Source: Bigelowiella natans CCMP2755
Lineage: Eukaryota > Protista > Cercozoa
NCBI GenBank assembly: GCA_000320545.1
Contig: ADNK01001072.1
Span: 1-64,000 of the forward strand
Length of the DNA: 64,000 nt
Direction: 5' to 3'
The notes beneath the pieces were generated by a model, which saw only the letters and a program-made list of their open reading frames with translations, did no database searches and had not been told where the DNA came from. How positions within the stretch are numbered: the first letter of the stretch is position 1; each line of letters starts with the position of its first letter. Made by a program: the position numbers and the translations under genes. Shown here piece by piece: positions 32,556 through 43,868 of this stretch.

Positions 32556-35500
32556 TTGTTGACACTATGTAGTAGTAGTAGTAGCAGTAATCTCGATGAC
32601 TTTGCAATGTGATTGAGAGGCTGCACGTATGGTGTGGCCCATCAACCACACATTATGATACTCGTAAAGATGATTAAGCAACACACTACATCCCTTCTTC
32701 TGAGAGCACAGTTTGGTTTTTCGTGCATACTAATGTAGGTACGAGTTTCTTACGACCTCCATGGCAGCGAGCCACCAATTGCCGTTACTAAAGAGCCACT
32801 ACCTCCTCTTTTGGTGAAATCTCTCCCCTATTCCCTCACTAATCTTGGAGTAGTCGTGATAGCACACAACAATATCCATTCTTCTTCTTCTTCTTCTTCT
32901 TCTTCTTCTTCTTCTTCTTCTTCTTCCTTGGGACAGGGGGCTAGTATTCCCACTCGTCAATGATCCCTTCCCCCCCCTTCCTCCTCACGCATGAATATCC
33001 GCTACTGCTCTACACTCACAGATAGTTTGGGCCGGACAGAACCAGCTTGACATTCGAGTGAGCGCAGCGTATGAACATCCTGCTGACGTGCCAGTGGTTG
33101 CTTCTTCTGCTGCTACAAGTAGTAGTACTGAGGTTTGTTGGATGATGCATGGGCTGCTATCTCTATTACATATTATTGTGCTTATATTCTTTCACTACTG
33201 TACCTCCTTCCATGCTTCTCTTACTTCTCCTCCTACCACTAAGGAGAAAAAGAAATAATTTTCTTGCTATAGATTGTACACCACGCATACCATCGTTGAT
33301 TTTTTGTCCCAGGCCTGTCTTTTCATCTTGAATTCGGCGCGTGTGTGTGTGTGTCCCCTGCTAAAAAACATATCGCTTTTCTTTTTTCTTTGCCCCAAAA
33401 AAGCGATTCCACGAGGAACTCTGTCGCTCGGCAACACCAAAACAAAAAAACTGTGGAATAAACACTGAGATCGTCCCCCCCTTTTCGCAGAAAACAAAGG
33501 AGGAAGGCAAGAAGGAACCTGGCTATGGTGAGGAGGGGGAGGAGAAGAAGCCACCTTCCATAGATTCCGTCCGTGTCAAGAGCCGGATTACATATCAGTA
33601 CTCAAACAATCAATTTATATAGTGCTACACACCACACCCACACACACACAGGCACACACGCACACACGCACGCAAACATACGACGCAATAGCACCAGCAC
33701 ATTCGAATAACATGTGTATAACATAGATACAGAAGTCATACTTCTTCTCCTTCCTCCCCCCTTGCTCTCTTGCTCTTATGATGATGATCGTCGTCATCAT
33801 CATCATCATTACTATCGCTATCGCTGTATATGCGGTTAGATTTGAATACTACCAAGTCGACGTCACGACGGTGAGCGCAGTAGCAGTAGTAGTGATAGTG
33901 GTAGTAGTACTAGTAGTAGCAGTAGTAGTAGTAGTAGTAACACCAACAGATATGCACGCCTAAGGAGAGATGAAGAGTCCCTTCCCCCCCTCCCTCCCCT
34001 GCATAGATATGATCAGCATTACACTCGCAGCATATCATCGCCTCTATCATCATTACCGGCAATGATGCGTTGAGGAGAGTCGGGCGTTGATTCGTTGGCC
34101 CTTCGGTATCTTACACCACGAACAACCTTAAAAAAAAGGTATTCGCATATCCGGACATTTCGTCGGAGGATGGCAAAGCCTTAACGAGCAACTGCGATTT
34201 TGTGAGTGACTAGGATGACGACTACACCTTGATGATCCATGTTGGGAGATGATGATTCATCATTGGCCTTCATGTCATTCGGAGCAACTCCTCCTCATCA
34301 CATTGAATTGTTGTTGATCATCAGCGGGCGAAGCTGAAGAAGGGTGATGCTGTGCGAGTGTTTCGCTCCTCTCGCCAAGAATGGCTCCCGTGCGTCGTGG
34401 ATTCGGTGTGTGGATAAATACATAGAATAGCCCTTCCCTGGGACGAATGACAATGACAATGATGGTGATGATGATGATGATGATACCTTCTTCAAGTTGA
34501 ATAATATCCTTACGTCATCATATCATAATCACCATCGTGATTACTCTGTGCATTCAGCATTTTCCCTCCCTCTTTCCCCCCCGTCAATATATCGTTCATT
34601 TCATCAAGGTCACGGAGAAGTGCATAGTAGTTAAATTTGAGGATAACAGTACGAAGCAGCTGGCGCGCTTTGGACCCGAATTGGAGAAGAAGGTGCGTGT
34701 GGTGTAGTTGGTAGCTGGGAAGATGTTTTTGGTGGTAGCGGTGTTTAGGGGGAGGGGGGGGGGGCAGGTTAACGATGGGCGCCAGTCTATAGGTCTCTAA
34801 TAATAACCCGATGTACGAATACAATTTTAAGACATATATGTACACTTTTACCACTATCCAAAACTCAAACCTTCAATGTTGTTTTGCAATTCATGACATT
34901 CTACGGGTTCTTAGTGTCAACAACACGTGTCGCTCCCCCCCGTCCCCCCCCCCTCTCTCTTTTTGCCACCATCCACCAATCCACCATCCATCCATGATTA
35001 GGACCATGACGTGCTACCAGAGGTGAGATACGAAGTGGAGGTGGAGCTTCTTCCTGATATTCTTACTGAGGAGGAATCGAGGAAAAGGGTGAGAAGGCTA
35101 CTGATACTACACTACTAATACTACCGCTATTGCTACTAATGCTGCTCCCATTGCTAATGGCAACCACCACCTCCTTAAGACCTACTGAAAGACGCATTCA
35201 CTCACTCCAAGACCACACCCACTTTCTTCGCAGATTCTCTGGAAATGGCTTCAGTGCATCCTGCTACTCCGGAGCCATGCAATGGTTGATTTGGAGCAAT
35301 GATGATGATGACGATGATCGTGATAGTCCCCCCCCCCATCGGCATATTGCATAAAGCCCTCGTACCCATGTGCAGCACACACCACACTCCACACAGATAT
35401 TCTACGACAAATCAGAATATTTTGCGCGCGGTTACTATCATCATCTCCTTCTTTTTTTTAAATTTGGCCGTTTGCTGAACTAACATCCGCCTCCTTGCTT

Positions 35501-35621
35501 GTGTCTCTATCGTTACCTCAGAGACCTTCATATACACCCCAGCAGGTCGCAGCTCTCCAAGGCCGGCCAAGGACAGGAGAAAAACGTAGCAGATCTCACC
35601 ACTCAACGACGACATCGTCAA
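31310..35621 (-). CDS. Probable multi-exon gene of unknown function; boundaries uncertain
   Basis: Coding-like segments on the minus strand separated by SSR-rich introns (e.g. SFEVVTGSPVSLLNTASMHSILEYL...IFYL, LLLQFGSKARQLLRTVILKFNYYALLRDLDEM); no recognised domain. Confidence 0.4.
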
Positions 35622-36040
35622 ATAAGCGTGGTAAAGGGGAGGGTGAGAGTTAATAGTTAAGTGAATGAAAGCATGATGATGGTATAGGAAAGTGCGCTGG
35701 ATAACTTTATCTGCGCTATTTGATGTACATTAAAATATATATAATGGGTTAGAAGATTTGCTGCTTTTGATGCGAACAAAGCAACCAAAGCTATAGAAAG
35801 CAACAAGGTTAGCATACATACCTAGCACGTGCGTGAGATGGAGCTGTCGCACTTGTGGGCGCCCGCCATAAGTCATGCCCCAGCCAAGCTCTAATAAACA
35901 CTTGGCCTCGCACCCATAGCTAGATAGTGATGCATAGTGGATACATCTCCATTGCAAGGCCTTCTGACACCGTAGGCACATGCACGCGCTGTGCTGCGCT
36001 AGCTTCGCAGCTAGTCTAGCTAGTGTTACAGCAGCACATT

Positions 36041-36437
36041 CGTTGGAACAATTTCACATGAGCGCACATGTCATGGGAACATGAGCGCACATGTCATGGG
36101 AATGCAGCAGCAAGCAAATCATCCTAGTCAATTGTTGTGACGGATGTTGCCGCAACCGGCCCGTTACGTTCCATTGGGAGCAGTTACCAAGTCGCAGTTT
36201 CGGTTGTTTGGACACGAAACGGAGGCAGTTTAGTGCAGACGACTTGGCGCGACTTCGGCCATTGGAACGGACCGACGACATGATTCAACAGCCCGTCTCA
36301 TCAGGAAGCTAGGCAGCACTGCGCGACGGGCAGCTGAGCGCAGTTCATGCTGAATGTTTGAGCAAGTAGCTCATTGTTTGTTGTGCATGTGACAGGTTTT
36401 CACTTGACAACACATTGCATCGTTGATGAATCCAACG
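36041..36437 (+). repeat. 5' LTR (contains a 23-bp tandem duplication ACATGAGCGCACATGTCATGGGA near its start)
   Basis: Matches 42804-43152 over about 350 bp; has 7-bp inverted termini. Confidence 0.88.
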
Positions 36438-36449
36438 GATCAAGAGTCC
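36438..36449 (+). other. Putative primer-binding site complementary to the tRNA-Lys(CUU) anticodon arm (half-tRNA priming)
   Basis: GATCAAGAGTCC immediately follows the LTR. Restoring CA to TA gives GATTAAGAGTCC, the reverse complement of GGACTCTTAATC (stem, CU-CUU-AA loop). Confidence 0.55.
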
Positions 36450-36508
36450 ATCACTTGCCGGTGTGCGGAGAAGCTCTCAGCTGTCAGCTGGATTGATGCA
36501 AGCTCTCC

Positions 36509-38362
36509 GTGAAAGTGAAGAGAATTGATGAATTCGATGGCAAGAAGGAGGAGGCCGTGTTTTTCCTGAAGTCCACACAATCAGAAGTGCTCAGCGCAGG
36601 TCGAACGCATTGGCGAGTTCTGTTAGGCAGAGGTGTCTTCTCTGGTGTGAAGTGTGACCTGGAGTGCGACGCCACTGAAGAGGATTTCGATGCATCTTCT
36701 GATGATGGATTGGACGGTGAGTCAAGAAGGAAAAAGAACATGCCCAAACTTGAAAAGGGATCTGACGATGAAGCTGCAAGCGACCCGCAAGAAAAGGCCA
36801 ACCGGAAGAAAGCCCACAAAACTCAGCGTGCTTGCAACAAATGCTCACAAAAGATTTGCAATGTCATCTTCTCGCGTCTCACCTCAAAGGTGTCACCTTC
36901 AATTGACCAGTGTGACATGGAGACGGGAGATGGGCCAGGGCTGCATCGGGCCCTTCAGGATGTCCATGTGGCAGGAACGGAAAATGGATTTGCAAGCATT
37001 TTCAAATTCGTCAACGTGAAGCAAGAAGGACCTTTGGCTGAACTCGAAGATTGCACCTTCAAGTTCAATCAACTGTGTCGACTGTTGGAGGAGAGGAGCA
37101 GCATCATCTCTCCGGACATTCGAAATGTGACACATTTGAATGGCTTGAGCAAAGATTTTGATTTGATCAGAGATCGCATTCGCGATGAAGGAACCTTGAA
37201 CGAGTCAAGAATCGAAGACATCTTGAGACGAGTCAGGGGTGCTGCAGAAAGAAACGGAGAAAGAAAGAAGGACAAATGTGTGAAATCCATCTCCAAAAGC
37301 AACGGCCCACGGATGCTCTTGGCTCCAGATGGCAAAGACAAGTTCAATCGGAAGCTCAAGTGTTTCAACTGCAAAAAGCATCATCCTGGCGGAGAACGCA
37401 GCTGCACAGAACCTTGTCGAATTTGCAAACAGCCTGGGCATGCCAGATGCAATTGCAAACTCAGGAACAAACAGTCGCCCCACACCCCAACGAGGGGAAA
37501 TGATGCTCACTTGGCAGTTTCTCATTCGGGCAAAATGCCGAATTGGAAAGTCGGAATTTCATCTGGAGATGAAGGTCTGATTGCAGCTGATGAAGCTCTG
37601 TTCAGCAACGAGATTCACACCACATGCGTCGACAGCGGCGCTGCGAAACATTGTGTGAGCTCAGAGTTCATTGAATCACGAGCTTCAGAGGTGACGGATC
37701 ACGTCACCGAGCAAGGCAGTGTTGGCACTGCTGGTGATCAAAGGCTGGAGATTGCGGGTTCTGCCAACGTGGCAGGATTGAAAGGTGTCAAGATTGTCAA
37801 GGGTCTCAAAGCAAGTTTGGCAAGCGTTTCTGAAATGTGCAAAGAGGACAATTGCTGTCTCGCATGCAGTGCCGACAAGGTTTGGAAAACATCGAAAGAC
37901 AGTCTGACCCTGCCGGACAACGCCATCTGCATCGGCACTCGTTCGAGAGGATTGTGTGTTTGCAATTTCAGCACCTTTGAAGAGGATGCATCGGATGAAG
38001 CACATCTCACTGACAGCGCTCCTGCGAATGTGCTCTTCAAATGGCACCAGATCTTGGCACATCTGGCTCCAACAAGTTTGCACAGAGCGGTGAAAAATGG
38101 CACAATTGACATTCCAGAAATTGACCGTTTGTCTCCTGCAGAGCTGGAGAAGGCATTCAAGGAGTTTCCTGAATGCAAGACTTGTGGTGAAGCTTTTGGT
38201 GTCAAACGCAATCGTCGCACCGCGTTTCAGCGTGTGCTCGATTCAGGCAAAACTCAGGGTTGTCAAGCCGATCAGGATCTCATGTGGCCTTGGACACCGT
38301 GCTCGAAGGAGGGACATCGCGGTGCGTCATCATTTGGCTGGATTTGGGGAAATGTGGGATGA
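36509..38362 (+). pseudogene. Copia Gag-protease-integrase(N-terminal) polyprotein, truncated before the IN core/RT/RNaseH; Tyr-free
   Basis: Zinc knuckle CRICKQPGHARCNC, protease VDSGAAKH, GL(C) where Copia has GLY, HHCC finger WHQILAHL...CKTC, and start of the IN core DLMWPW...SKEGHR. There is no ATG start and homology is lost after about 38320. Confidence 0.88.
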
Positions 38363-38829
38363 TCATTTGCATGGCAAATGACAGAGCAATCCTGACTGTG
38401 TGACCATGGACACAGCACATGTCACATGTGCATCATGTGTGTCATGTGCACGCATGTCCATTGTTGTTGAATGAACACGCACAAATGAGAACTTGAGTTC
38501 ATGCATGTGTGTAGCCGATGCACGATGATGAATGGATTGAGCTTTGAAAAAGACACAACTCAAGACAATGCAGAATGTCCGTCAAATTAGCGGATACTCA
38601 TTGTAGACACGTAATGTCATACATGTATCACATATGCTATTACTATGTCTATTATGTAGCTGCTGCTTTGCATAGCTACATTAGGATGACTATTTTAAAG
38701 ATTTAATCACTCCATTACATCCGTCTCATATCCATTTACATGTAATCTTCAACATTTTACATTAAAAAATCATCTAATCATTACGGCTCAATTACGTTTA
38801 TACATCAATATTTTCACGCAGCTGCAATG

Positions 38830-41146
38830 TTATATCTGCGAAATCAGCTCTGGGTTGTTTTCCAAAGAAAATGTCCACTCAAGAGCTAGAGCTACGGTAG
38901 ATCCATGATTCACAACACCGTGAGCCCAAAGGTTGGGAATGAATATAAGATCGCCTTCCTCTTGCTCACATTCAATTTTACTCCTGGGATGATACTCAGC
39001 AGCGTGCTGCTGCTGTGGCCTCATTGTCCAATCTTTCATTTTCATTTTACTGTAGACCCTCTCACTTGGAGGTAGGAGCGTCCAGCTCTTTTTGCCATAC
39101 ACAACAATATTAAAGGCATACATATGGTGATGCATAGGCGACCCACTTCCATCAGGACCGAGGAAGAGCTGTGTCGTAACTTTGTGCGATTTGCTTTGTA
39201 GATGCTTTGCAAATGAAGGGAAACCAAAATGCACTTTCCCATCACGAGACGAGGCTATTTCCGCCCTTCGTGCGCCCTCCTCCTCTCCTACAGGGCCTTC
39301 CTCAACGATTACTAAGTATGGGGCGGTTTCTTTCGAATTGCTGCTGCTATTACAAGTGGACTGCCGCTGGGTGTGGTTGGAACTACCGTATTCACAAGGG
39401 ATGTATCGTTTCAAATATTTTCGTACCGTCGTTCGGCGGGTGCGCAGACCATGTTTATGAGCGTATGGAATCTTACTAACCTCCACCCTTTTCCTCCCGA
39501 GGCGCGAAAGTAACCCTTTCCTACTCATTGTCGCTCTTAGTTCGTCCCACCTCTCGTGCTCCAATGCTCCCGTAACGAGCACGGGCTGAGAGCGGTACAA
39601 GAATTCCACAAGAAACCTCTCTACTGTCATATTTGCTGCTGGAATGACGGAAAAGTCGCAGCGAGCTCTTTCTTGTTTTCGATACCTATTGTCTTCCTCA
39701 TCGGAGCAGCTTCCCCCTTCGCCATTTCCGATTTCCGTTCTACAGACATTTTCACGAACATCAGCATCACCCATATTCAAACTGCCGCTGTTTGGATATT
39801 TTCCATGAACTTCTTGGACAGAAGGGTCGAAGTGATCCCTAGACTCGTAACCTCTACCGAAGGAATCAAGTCTTTGCCCATTGTTTACAATTGTGAAAAG
39901 TTCATAATCATGCAAAGCTGAGTGGAGGCTTGGATAATCCATCGGACGGTATGTTGGTAATATTGAAGGGGATGGTGATGCTAAAGAAGATCTTTCTTTT
40001 CCCTTGAGATTAGCACCATGCGAAAGGAATAACCGCACTACCCAATGGAACCCTTCGATTGTCTAGCGTAACATATACAATCAACAAACAGACAACAACA
40101 CCTTGATGAGCTATTCCCAAAGTTTTGGTTTGTGTGAAAATGTTTCATTGCGACCAAAAAGTATGAATAGTGTTAGAAAGAATAGTTTTATGTATACTGC
40201 GAATCGCAATGGGGTGAATCCTAGCGAGTCCTGGGCGTGAAGGAGAGAAGGTTCCGTTTTCAAAACAGCACTGAAGACCTAGAGAGTACAGAATCGCAGA
40301 TAATGAAAATGCAAAGACCTCAAGCATTGGAAAAAGGAATCTAGTTGCCAATGACCTTCGAAAATCGAAATTTCAAAGAGCACACAATTGCTTTTCGAGA
40401 GACGGTATCCGGGCTGTGCATACCGCACGCTACAAGCTCACGTAGCGAAACATCTTTAGTGTCCTTCAATGCGTTTTCTAAAGTTGCGCCTACCTTTATT
40501 TTTTGAAACGTTAGCATTCCGTGCAAGCGTATATTGCAATTAGAACTTCTTGGTAATAGATTGATTGTGCCCCACCTTTGCTTTCAGCAAGTGCAATGAG
40601 CTGAAAGTAGCTTTGATTGACATGACGGACACCAAGAAATGTAGCACATTCCTGTTTGAAGGGGTGTCCAATAATTCAGTTCGTTTGTATAAATGCCCGC
40701 TTTCATCTAGCTGAGAATTGTATTATTATACCCAATTCCTTGCCGATGTCTGCTTTCAGTATCGTACAAGGAGAAAGCCCGGTCGTTCCCTATGCATTCT
40801 CGTAGGAAGCTTGGTTTGGCGTCGTTGCCTGAATTTGTACTTGCATTCATAACTCAATCGACTTCAACTGGTAATCCTCTTTCAATTTTCAGTCTATTAC
40901 CAAGATGCTTGAGCACTTCTCTCTCTGTATGGTTGCCCTCGAGCAACATAACCAGCTCTGATCCACACCTCCAAGTTTCACGGAGGACGTGCGACTCAGA
41001 CACCGTGTTCCTGAAAGATATCATTCATGGTCTGTTTGCCTGGTACACGATACAGAATCAGCCCACCTATGCGCACCACTGAGGAGAATTGGAGCCCATG
41101 CCAGCGCTGCGAGCAGCCACAAAGACCCGGAAGGGACGCCGGTCAT
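38830..41146 (-). CDS. Signal peptide + ankyrin repeats + JmjC (JMJD8-like, HxH) protein, about 7 exons, nested antisense within the LTR element
   Basis: MTGVPSGSLWLLAALAWAPILLSGAH signal (ATG 41146); ankyrin QDSLGFTPLRFA|TIEGFHWVVRLFLSHGAN; JmjC FLYRSQPVLVTG...QLFLGPDGSGSPMHHHMYAFNIVVYGKKSWTLLPP...QEEGDLIFIPNLWAHGVVN; GT-AG introns in frame. Confidence 0.88.
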
Positions 41147-41496
41147 CCGGCCGCGCTTACGAGTAGATAATCTCCCCTCCTCCTTTTTCTCCTTCGAGAG
41201 CGGGGATTCGGCTCGAAGCCCCGGCGGAAGAACTCCTGCAATCTTCGATCACATCCCACTCGAGACATCACCCACATGCCCCTTTCGAAATTATCACGAA
41301 ACAGGTCCTATTTTCATGTCGCGTCAACATTCTTTCACGACTAAAACAAACACTTTCAAATCGCCAAACGTCGAAAGGATCTTGCGAGCTCAGAATTGCC
41401 CTCCCCAGGCTGCTCGGAAGGAGGTTGGTGACCGCTGAGACACGTTGCTAAAATGCCACTGGGGGTAGCTTTCACTGCAAGTCTCCGGGGAAGGAA

Positions 41497-42803
41497 GAAT
41501 CCAGGCCAGCAGCAAAGTTGGATGAAGGAAGGAAGGGCAGGAGGACAGCTGTTGCGCGTAAGGTGTTCACAGGCCGAGGCGCTACGTGCACAAGTAGGCA
41601 GGGGGGGGGAAGGCACGTTTGCTTCCTTTTGAAGAGTTATGTTCATTTTTGTCAAAGATTATATTTTTATTAAATCGTGCACTGCGTAATCATTCGCGAA
41701 GCTTTCGCGAATGCCGCCGCACGTGGGGCAGCACACTTCCGGTGTGCTGCCATGAGTCCCGCCGGAACCCACGTGCCTATACTGTATTAATATCTACGTT
41801 ATCTATATTCTATATCCGCGACAACCCCTTTGTTGTCGCACGTGACTTGTGCTCGCGTAGTAGTACGCGCTACACAGCTGCGTGTGCACAAGCGGCTGCC
41901 TCGATTCTCTGATGATGTTTTGACCTTTTTCACATGCATGCACCAAGTCAACTGTCATCAGGCGAAATCACCTGAAACTGCATGCATGACATCGTGCTGC
42001 AGAAGGAATGGCCGTTGTTTTTGTCTGCTCTGGCTCTGGCACGCTTGCCAGGACAGTTTTCAACGATGCGCTTGGTCACCTTTTCTGTCCTGGAGCACGC
42101 GGTGACAACACATCGCCCGTGTGTTGCACTTCGCAATTTGCTGCACAGCAAATTGAAGGAAAGGGCAGCGTGTTGGAGTGCTTTGCACTCAATGCGCGAA
42201 GTGCATGCTTGTGGCAGCAGTGGCAACGCCGGCGGGCGTTTGCAGGCTGCGACAAGCAGTGCAGAACGGGCTGCCAATGCAGGCAGGTTCTGTGCCTGCG
42301 ACAAGGCAGGACAGTGCTGCATCAGCCATGTGCCAGCAAAGGAAGTGGGCGCGTCTTCCTCAAATCTGATGCCCGTGACAAGCACCCACGGCTGGGGTGC
42401 AAGGTGCGCGGAGGGAGAGGGGGGGGGGAGGGGAACGAAGATGGTCACGTGGGGAGGGCATGCATCCACAGGTGACGTGAACATCCACAGGATGTGCAAA
42501 AACAAAGTTGCAGAAGCAAACGTTGGAGTGCTTTGCACTCGAGAGCAGGAAGTGCGTGCTCGTGGTTGCAGCAGCAGCGACAAAGCAATGTTGCGGCGTT
42601 CTCCAGCTGCGACAAGCAACCAGCAGCACAAGTTGGTTTCAGGTGATTTTGCCTGATCATTGAGTCGTGCATGAAAAGCCACGTTGTGCGTCAACAAGAG
42701 AATCGAGGCAGCCGCTTGTGCAGCTGTCCTCCTGCCCTTCCTTCCTTCATCCAACTTTGCTGCCAGCCTGCATTCTGCAGCGCGCCGCCCTCTGCTTCCA
42801 ACA
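41497..42803. mobile_element. Nested fragments of a second LTR-like family: 42521-42803 (CGTTGGA...TCCAACA), a partial direct copy from 42171 (TGTTGGA, preceded by a purine-rich tract), and an inverted partial copy at about 41497-41978
   Basis: GTTGGAGTGCTTTGCACTC occurs at both 42172 and 42522. 41497-41551 and 41875-41978 are reverse complements of about 42635-42775. Confidence 0.65.
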
Positions 42804-43152
42804 CGCACGTGTCATGGGAATGCAGCAGCAAGCAAATCATCCTGGTCAATTGTTGTGACGGATGTTGCCGCAATCGGCCCGTTCCATTGGGAGCAGTCAC
42901 CAAGTCGCAGTTTCGGTTGTTTGGACACGAAACGGAGGCAGTTTAGTGCAGACGACTTGGCGCGACTTCGGCCATTGGAACGGACCGACGACATGATTCA
43001 ACAGCCCGTCTCATCAGGAAGCTAGGCAGCACTGCGCGACGGGCAGCTGAGCGCAGTTCATGCTGAATGTTTGAGCAAGTAGCTCATTGTTTGTTGTGCA
43101 TGTGACAGGTTTTTGCTTGACAATGCATTGCACATCGTTGATGAATCCAACG
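42804..43152 (+). repeat. 3' LTR (first ~22 bp missing or replaced by the nested LTR fragment)
   Basis: Aligns to 36086-36437 with 8 transitions and 2 small indels; followed by TSD ACATT. Confidence 0.88.
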
Positions 43153-43557
43153 ACATTTCAACCAGATGTTTTCGTGCGCACGTAGTCATCAGCTGCAACA
43201 ACAAACAGCACACATGTCACGTGCCAGCGGCATGTACGAAATGCTTGGTGACCAAAATGATTGCGGGGCGATCTTTTCTGATGCATTGTTGCTTGTGCAT
43301 GCATGATTTCTCATCACTCCAGCAAAATGCAGCTGGCTAGCTGGCTAGCTGGGTCGGTGTGCACCTTCGTGTCCCGCAGAATTGCATACATGTGCACTGT
43401 GCGCAGTCCCAAAAAACGCAAGCCAGACGACGCCGCAAAATTATGAGTCCTACTACTTGGTATCCAGCAAGTACGTCTGTATCGCTGTACGAAGCTACGC
43501 TAATAAGCTACGTTCAAAGAGAGAGATGATGCATCTGCGGCCGACTATTTGTGCCGC

Positions 43558-43868
43558 CTACAACTCATCGTGTGTTTTCTCTGACTGCTGTTCTTCAGCG
43601 CCACCACTCCCTCCTGATCTCCCTTCACCTTCGTCCTCACTATCGTCGCCGTCAGGTGTAAGTACAAAGAGGGGTTCATAGCTAACCATGTATGGCTTCG
43701 GAGCGTCCAATTTCCTTTCGTGCCACCCAACACGCGTGACCGTTCTCCAGCCCTATAACGATAACCAAGTATTTCACTCACAGTCGAATGCAGCATATGC
43801 GTATGGTTTCTTAGTCGGTTATACAGAGTTATGAATGTTGATGACAGTGATAAGATAGGAGTAATGCT

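Follow-up and report, generated by a model that had tools for sequence, protein, structure and literature searches.

TpA-free tracts in a Copia-type remnant and a neighbouring repeat of Bigelowiella natans: footprint of a probable host mutator of silent non-self DNA

Why do two segments of a 64 kb stretch of Bigelowiella natans DNA, one in the remnant of a Copia-type retrotransposon and the other largely in an unclassified repeat, contain no TA dinucleotide at all? The segments lie at 36626-38511 (tract 1) and 41873-42943 (tract 2) of this stretch, here called the window, over the whole of which TA gaps and dinucleotide counts were taken. Comparisons show a chromosomal, strand-symmetric, TpA-specific transition process that is modulated by the flanking bases and confined to segments. 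It is likely that this is the work of a host mutator of TpA acting on silent non-self DNA, with the Copia-type long terminal repeat (LTR) remnant and the unclassified repeat as its targets, and presumably with adenine deamination as its chemistry. The initial annotation of the locus considered that such a process might be undescribed. This is not the case, as TpA hypermutation of integrated viral DNA in B. natans has been reported (Mettrop et al., bioRxiv 10.64898/2026.01.13.699255), and Table S8 of that preprint lists gene 87544, which is the gene at this locus. The phenomenon is therefore already described, this gene is on the published list, and no new phenomenon is presented here. The additions are the sparing of CTAG, the equal and random CA and TG outcomes, the edges that are sharp at junctions, and the sparing of an expressed gene and of a high-copy transcribed family.

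There are 3738 TAs in the window (observed/expected, o/e, 0.76), and at the background density of ~62/kb about 117 would be expected in tract 1 and about 67 in tract 2. Both tracts have none, the gaps being 1888 bp and 1073 bp, in agreement with the manual scan on which the initial annotation was based. The longest TA gaps elsewhere in the window are 257 bp, adjoining tract 1, and then 192 bp, and the gaps of all other dinucleotides are at most 342 bp. CpG is plentiful in the tracts, as had also been noted (79 and 59 sites), and its o/e of 0.70-0.71, against 0.83 in the background, does not amount to depletion. CA has an o/e of 1.57 in tract 1 and 1.88 in tract 2, and TG of 1.61 and 1.58, respectively. 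The 184 CA and 186 TG of tract 1 are ~42 and ~49 above the expectation from the usual o/e of the window, a surplus that equals the ~91 TAs missing by the same expectation. In 31.3 kb of non-redundant TA-free DNA, pooled from loci of the B. natans genome, the CA+TG surplus is 54/kb where 62/kb of TA is missing, and neither AA (o/e 1.25, background 0.97) nor CG (o/e 0.74) is depleted. The ratio of CA to TG is 184:186 in tract 1 and 115:112 in tract 2, and their order is random, as in background DNA, by a runs test that is diluted by native CA and TG sites (z +0.83 and +0.60). Since the two products are equal in number and randomly interleaved, both strands have been mutated, site by site; the earlier suggestion that both strands are hit is thus upheld.

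Two independent Illumina DNA runs (2021 and 2025) each yield a 1878-nt Logan contig over 36485-38362 with 0 differences to the 2012 reference, and 38699-41538 likewise has 0 differences. The depth of tract 1 in these runs is that of single-copy DNA, matching its neighbourhood. The sequence of tract 1 is therefore real and stable and not an artefact of assembly. Contigs of this kind drop rare variants, so the absence of differences says little on current mutation.

The tracts lie among the following features, given by window coordinates.

36086-36419, plus strand: left LTR copy of a Copia-like family, in direct repeat with 42804-43132; further copies are L021 and L026
36509-38362, plus strand: 617-aa (amino acid) open frame, free of tyrosine (Tyr), that shows the CX2CX4HX4C knuckle of Gag, the protease motif DSG and the N-terminal zinc-finger region of an integrase
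36626-38511, unstranded: TA-free tract 1, 1886 bp, single-copy
38464-38656, unstranded: copy of a dispersed repeat, unrelated to the Copia remnant, beginning where the remnant ends
38715-41575, minus strand: JmjC/Cupin_8 gene, expressed and spliced, with at least 7 exons (RNA contig, Pfam)
41550-41875, minus strand: solo LTR of a young Ty3-like retrotransposon, TA-normal, inside TA-free repeat DNA
41873-42943, unstranded: TA-free tract 2, 1071 bp, of which 41876-42803 is an unclassified repeat and 42804-42943 the start of the right LTR copy
42804-43132, plus strand: right LTR copy, its 5' end short by ~50-60 bp relative to the left copy; 3 TAs kept, all TAG

The 617-aa product matches EP00466_Bigelowiella_natans_P021505 (jgi/Bigna1/87544) exactly. 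A Pfam search of the open reading frame (ORF) gave no family at E up to 0.01, and its class was assigned through relatives. An exhaustive HMMER search found 48 of these, the long ones carrying RVT_2, rve, gag_pre-integrs and zf-CCHC, and by this sequence kinship the frame is identified as a remnant of the Ty1/Copia polyprotein family, not a complete member. Its best match within its own genome is only 26% identical, and the family ancestor cannot be inferred. Tyr is absent from the ORF but makes up 1.7-4.0% of eight relatives. At 15 columns that are mostly Tyr in the relatives the ORF has cysteine at nine, histidine at three, phenylalanine at two and tryptophan at one, and it reads GLCVC where relatives show GLYxY. 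The cysteines and histidines, at 12 of the 15 columns, are what a change of TAY into TGY or CAY yields, just as had been proposed for this Tyr-free Gag-Pol frame. The nearest intact relative, whose ORF of 1668 aa lies on a scaffold of a Tara metagenome (L074), has a TA o/e of 0.65 and 3.2% Tyr. The absence of TA is therefore not intrinsic to the family. Another Copia relative, on the metagenome scaffold encoding P0003 (L075), has a TA o/e of 0.39, with 1.7% Tyr and 4.9% histidine and without a clear CA/TG surplus.

A change from TA to CA or TG never makes a new stop codon, since the sole source of TGA is TAA, itself a stop codon. The process can therefore cause only missense, as had been argued initially, and the frame stays open. 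There are 50 TGAs over all frames in the 1886 bp, and the computed chance of 617 codons staying open is ~6e-8. The 617-codon frame is the original frame, preserved because the process was fast relative to background mutation. In this way the locus shows the end-state of a retrotransposon compactly, with a frame that is open yet Tyr-free. Because frames are preserved, dead elements get annotated as genes, and such 'zombie' open frames are a warning to annotators.

The element ends at 38463 and lacks the integrase core, reverse transcriptase (RT) and RNase H. A different repeat family (41876-42803) lies directly against the right LTR copy, and inspection by eye of the surroundings of the LTR pair revealed no target-site duplication. 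What is present is thus a patchwork of pieces of elements and not one intact provirus. Similarity of the left LTR to its family begins near 36035; this copy is partly eroded and has kept 6 TAs. The unclassified repeat family is TA-free in all copies seen. In the dispersed repeat copy at 38464-38656 the TAs are mostly retained from 38512 onwards, and sister copies have CA or TG at those sites. Contig C105 (L011, 4360 bp) shares 99.3% identity with 41841-42803, a stretch that runs from where the young LTR ends to the far side of the tract 2 repeat; it carries the same CA/TG pattern and diverges from the window exactly where the right copy of the Copia LTR begins. Either the region was duplicated recently as a segment or C105 is another assembly of it, and the contig is probably scaffold 226 of the preprint, both being 4360 bp long. 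A TA-rich low-complexity stretch at 38589-38784 has a summed contig depth ~100x the single-copy level in the DNA runs. No Rfam family was found above threshold in 35500-43700.

The direction of the change can be read from copies of the same sequence. Between the left and right LTRs there are 8 substituted columns, 6 of them TA/TG, TA/CA or CA-versus-TG differences at the same dinucleotide. In the alignment of four LTR copies, 23 of 42 variable columns are drawn from {TA,CA,TG}, and several columns hold all three states. The segment 38323-38464 and its sole paralogue (L002) differ by 9 CA/TG doubles and 2 other substitutions. Transitions at TpA on both strands are thus seen in the LTR, repeat-family and solo-LTR alignments, and these comparisons show that the change acts on chromosomal DNA after copies have separated. 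The two strands of a TA step are equally likely to be changed, sites are changed singly, and the change continues until the TAs are exhausted, CTAG being by far the slowest.

The same changes have been caught directly in this species. In mutation-accumulation lines, 230 of 231 de novo mutations in integrated regions of nucleocytoplasmic large DNA virus (NCLDV) and virophage origin were TpA to TpG/CpA, at a rate ~1000x background, and only some lines show hypermutation (10.64898/2026.01.13.699255). The mutations arose in integrated DNA-virus sequence during clonal growth, and the NCLDV region is single-copy (10.64898/2026.01.13.699255). The A:T to G:C mutator at TpA that was postulated initially is therefore supported by the paralogue and LTR comparisons and by mutation accumulation alike. 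The preprint also reports 324 TpA-depleted coding sequences, enriched in RT and DDE domains, as well as 124 genomic clusters of TpA-depleted windows, with scaffold 226 (4360 bp) being entirely a cluster, and proposes an ADAT2 homologue as a candidate enzyme (10.64898/2026.01.13.699255). Its main text makes no mention of LTRs, flanking context or CTAG.

Which TAs escape is governed by their flanks. Among 117 surviving TAs counted inside strongly depleted DNA, CTAG accounts for 65 (56%), compared with 5.1% of TAs in normal DNA, and TAG/CTA contexts for 103 (Fisher p = 2e-28), which confirms the earlier impression that survivors are mostly TAG/CTA. ATAA, ATAC and ATAT have nearly vanished. A hand tally of Table S2 of the preprint (10.64898/2026.01.13.699255) for scaffold 10 gives 206 TpA events, distributed over the contexts as TAA/TTA 67, TAT/ATA 67, TAC/GTA 52 and TAG/CTA 20. 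The last of these compares with ~21% expected, for which the normal DNA of the window serves as a proxy and not the TA sites of the region itself. Asymmetric CTAH sites have yielded both products equally often, 32 versus 34, and a flanking C:G pair therefore slows both strands alike. Splitting the CA/TG surplus by tetranucleotide gave too noisy a picture of the flank effect, erased DNA and background differing in composition. In the scaffold 10 tally there are three A-to-G changes at TAG and 17 of the equivalent T-to-C at CTA. Table S2 also contains four T-to-C events in ATG/ATT, which are not TpA, though the text of the preprint puts all but one at TpA.

The erased segments have sharp edges. 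Tract 1 ends at most 50 bp from the junction at 38463/38464, and tract 2 starts only a few bases from where the solo LTR ends, at 41875. Erasure stops within 50 bp of the points where an expressed gene of host type and the LTR of a young transcribed retrotransposon adjoin. The gene at 38715-41575 is covered by RNA contigs, which reveal six GT..AG introns on the minus strand, and its TA content is normal. An ankyrin-like motif is present in it, and Pfam places Cupin_8/JmjC on 38830-40038; the gene model was examined exon by exon, with the exons not joined. At its 5' end the RNA contig of this gene continues into the young solo LTR. No RNA contig was found on tract 1, except for one partial match near 36629-36824.

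For the Ty3-like family of which the solo LTR at 41550-41875 is a member, at least 684 LTR matches at 98-99% identity were counted. The LTR pairs of this family lie 5389 bp apart and are identical in 8 of 9 elements, its TA o/e is ~1.1 and its RNA depth is very high. Apart from its last 190 bp, tract 1 is without a paralogue at the DNA level in the genome. With tract 1 single-copy and a family of at least 684 matches TA-normal, repetition is not the trigger. From 211 events, 6169 TA sites and 3132 generations (10.64898/2026.01.13.699255), a rate of 211/(6169 x 3132) = ~1.1e-5 per TA site per generation was computed, which corresponds to a half-life of ~63,000 generations. The young Ty3-like copies therefore cannot be under the targeted regime. 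A low-level exposure of the family to the process exists, as 11 of 16 variant columns of its LTR, and 6 of 7 differences in the solo-LTR family, are TpA transitions.

Within the LTR, TpA transitions cluster in a T-rich patch (L046/L047, LTR columns 1589-1637), and 11 of 27 LTR TA sites vary in the family against 1 of ~229 in 3 kb of internal sequence. Several of the LTR variants are common to many copies, and some may mark subfamilies. The sole Ty3-like element with differing LTRs (L050 and L067, contig C2101, 17466-23180) has TA to TG at 2 of its 3 substitutions, and its outer flank has 0 TA in 500 bp; it may be a copy that is just entering the targeted state. The DNA flanking Ty3-like copies (L045-L073) is TA-poor, with a pooled o/e of 0.41, and 10 of 33 flanks fall below o/e 0.25, compared with 0 of 500 random pieces of the window. 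The element, itself TA-normal, seems to sit preferentially in erased islands.

As for the mechanism, adenine at TpA may be converted to inosine by a nuclear enzyme of the zinc-deaminase fold, ADAT2/3-like or another of six such loci, and the inosine would then be copied as G. Recruitment of the enzyme would depend on a segment being non-self and transcriptionally silent, and not on its being repeated. Of the targeting of repeats or heterochromatin that was suggested initially, the repeat option has to be given up, given the single-copy tract 1 and the TA-normal Ty3-like family. The screen for deaminases that had been recommended found six zinc-deaminase (CDA)-fold loci (PF00383/PF14437) in the genome, on C980, C570, C3623, C3286, C1679 and C3588, and one A_deamin locus (PF02137) on C2414. 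By domain content the candidate enzymes thus outnumber those considered in the preprint, which are homologues of ADAT2 and ADAT3. Adenine deamination, put forward initially in the form of a TadA-like enzyme, is the leading but unproven mechanism.

Several points weigh against this reading. Chemistry directed at thymine yields the same products at the palindromic TA, which makes it indistinguishable by sequence. The equal products at CTAH are more in keeping with an enzyme that recognises the TA step in duplex form than with a deaminase reading a simple motif in single-stranded DNA. The evidence for silence as the rule of targeting comes from a single RNA contig set, a single raw run of which 6% was sampled, and the NCLDV region of the preprint, and the virophage region was not reported as silent (10.64898/2026.01.13.699255). 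As no target-site duplication was found for the LTR pair and the right LTR is truncated, the LTR comparison dates the change no more closely than after the divergence of the copies. Tract 1 has no remaining TA, so ongoing mutation would be invisible there.

A more specific version is possible, although it is probably not correct: a base-editing defence that reads duplex TA along with its flanks, which would make CTAG almost immune and let a flanking C:G pair retard both strands to the same extent, and that is guided, for example by small RNA, being aimed with a precision of 50 bp or less at silent segments and not at repeats or spreading chromatin. If true, such a guided duplex-reading base editor would belong to a type of enzyme system still uncharacterised in eukaryotes, and the young Ty3-like retrotransposon would be exploiting erased islands as safe harbours.

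It is rather unlikely, but conceivable, that the footprint and targeting are as described and the chemistry acts on thymine, with the T of TpA oxidised or modified (5-hydroxymethyluracil or 5-formyluracil type; 5hmU or 5fU) and mispairing with G to give T to C. Because TA is palindromic, the products (CA and TG) and the flank dependencies would be the same as for adenine deamination, and the equal products at asymmetric sites favour neither base. No Tet_JBP domain was found in the genome, though this search matched in no control genome either. A modified T would mispair only partially, and 230 of 231 clean transitions (10.64898/2026.01.13.699255) are better suited to a base that is always read as G.

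Targeting of the kind seen in fungal repeat-induced point mutation (RIP), whereby duplicates are detected by homology and both copies are mutated, is improbable here. Many TA-free loci are repeats, and the comparison with RIP is drawn in the preprint (10.64898/2026.01.13.699255). However, tract 1 is at single-copy depth with a paralogue only for its last 190 bp, the hypermutated NCLDV region is single-copy as well (10.64898/2026.01.13.699255), and the most repeated family seen has kept its TAs and its identical LTR pairs.

Less probable still is A-to-I editing of the retrotransposon transcript by ADAR or ADAT, fixed by reverse transcription. Enzymes of these types prefer U before the edited A (10.64898/2026.01.13.699255), and the main target at this locus is a retroelement. 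Editing of one strand would, however, give only TG, whereas CA and TG are equal here and randomly interleaved. LTR copies, and sister copies of non-coding repeats, differ in product at the same sites, and the published mutations arose in integrated DNA-virus sequence during clonal growth (10.64898/2026.01.13.699255). As the main route, RNA or cDNA editing is refuted by the strand symmetry.

There is hardly any room for decay of CpG (CG to TG/CA) in methylated repeats combined with an intrinsic absence of TA. Differences of CG versus CA/TG do occur among copies, and a lone CA-versus-TG column could descend from CG, which would require CpG to have decayed almost entirely. Yet CpG is undepleted (0.70-0.74 versus 0.83), so that double CA/TG differences should be rare, and they are at least as numerous as single CG differences. 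In addition, many columns combine TA with CA, TG or both, the CA+TG surplus matches the missing TA, and the intact relative is TA-normal. CpG decay and intrinsic composition are refuted by these counts, and the CpG-dominated spectrum against which the initial annotation had cautioned is not what is seen, columns of {TA,CA,TG} prevailing.

An artefact of sequencing or assembly, such as a modified base at TA that is read randomly as C or G, has nothing in its favour and is refuted by two independent Illumina runs, which match over 1878 nt with 0 differences, and by the same CA/TG pattern in C105.

Two further candidates were rejected. Error-prone synthesis by polymerase eta (WA to WG), which was offered initially as one of two mechanisms, is disfavoured, as AA should fall too but has an o/e of 1.25 against 0.97 in the background. 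Kataegis-like APOBEC patches would be expected to leave strand-coordinated runs, of which the runs test shows none (z +0.83 and +0.60).

The process is one of few cases in which a eukaryote rewrites foreign DNA in its own chromosomes by context-specific base change, and its direction is opposite to that of fungal RIP. The protection of CTAG, the edges at junctions and the spared neighbours leave a smaller field in which to look for the enzyme and the targeting signal.

In a complete Ty1/Copia element the Gag knuckle, DSG protease and integrase precede an RVT_2 reverse transcriptase, between LTRs bordered by a target-site duplication. Of this layout the remnant has kept the knuckle, DSG motif, pre-integrase/zinc-finger region and LTR copies, the right one truncated, and has lost the integrase core, RT and RNase H. 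Fungal RIP shares with the process seen here a regional, DNA-level action in which dinucleotide-specific transitions ruin mobile elements and leave sharp compositional islands. RIP, however, converts CpA to TpA, giving AT-rich DNA with many stops, whereas in B. natans TpA is removed, GC rises and no stops appear; RIP is triggered by duplication and the B. natans process is not. APOBEC3 and AID likewise impose, as a host activity, a context-specific deamination signature on foreign DNA, which is the working model here, but they act on cytosine in single-stranded DNA and leave strand-coordinated clusters, whereas here A:T pairs are changed symmetrically on both strands and without clustering of CA versus TG.

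ADAT2/ADAT3 and TadA, which act on A34 of tRNA, edit an A that follows U/T, matching TpA, and CDA-fold genes are present in the genome. Activity on DNA is cited for amphioxus ADAT2 and for engineered TadA (in 10.64898/2026.01.13.699255). Natural ADATs act on RNA loops, however, and the link to the B. natans process remains a proposal; the equal slowing of both strands by flanking C:G is also not an obvious effect of a single-strand motif.

The closest system is that of the preprint, which concerns the same organism, the same TpA to TpG/CpA changes on both strands, the same end-state of low TpA with high CpA+TpG, and foreign DNA as the target. Its direct evidence comes from NCLDV and virophage inserts, with transposons appearing only as enriched Pfam domains, whereas the evidence presented here was obtained copy by copy on an LTR retrotransposon.

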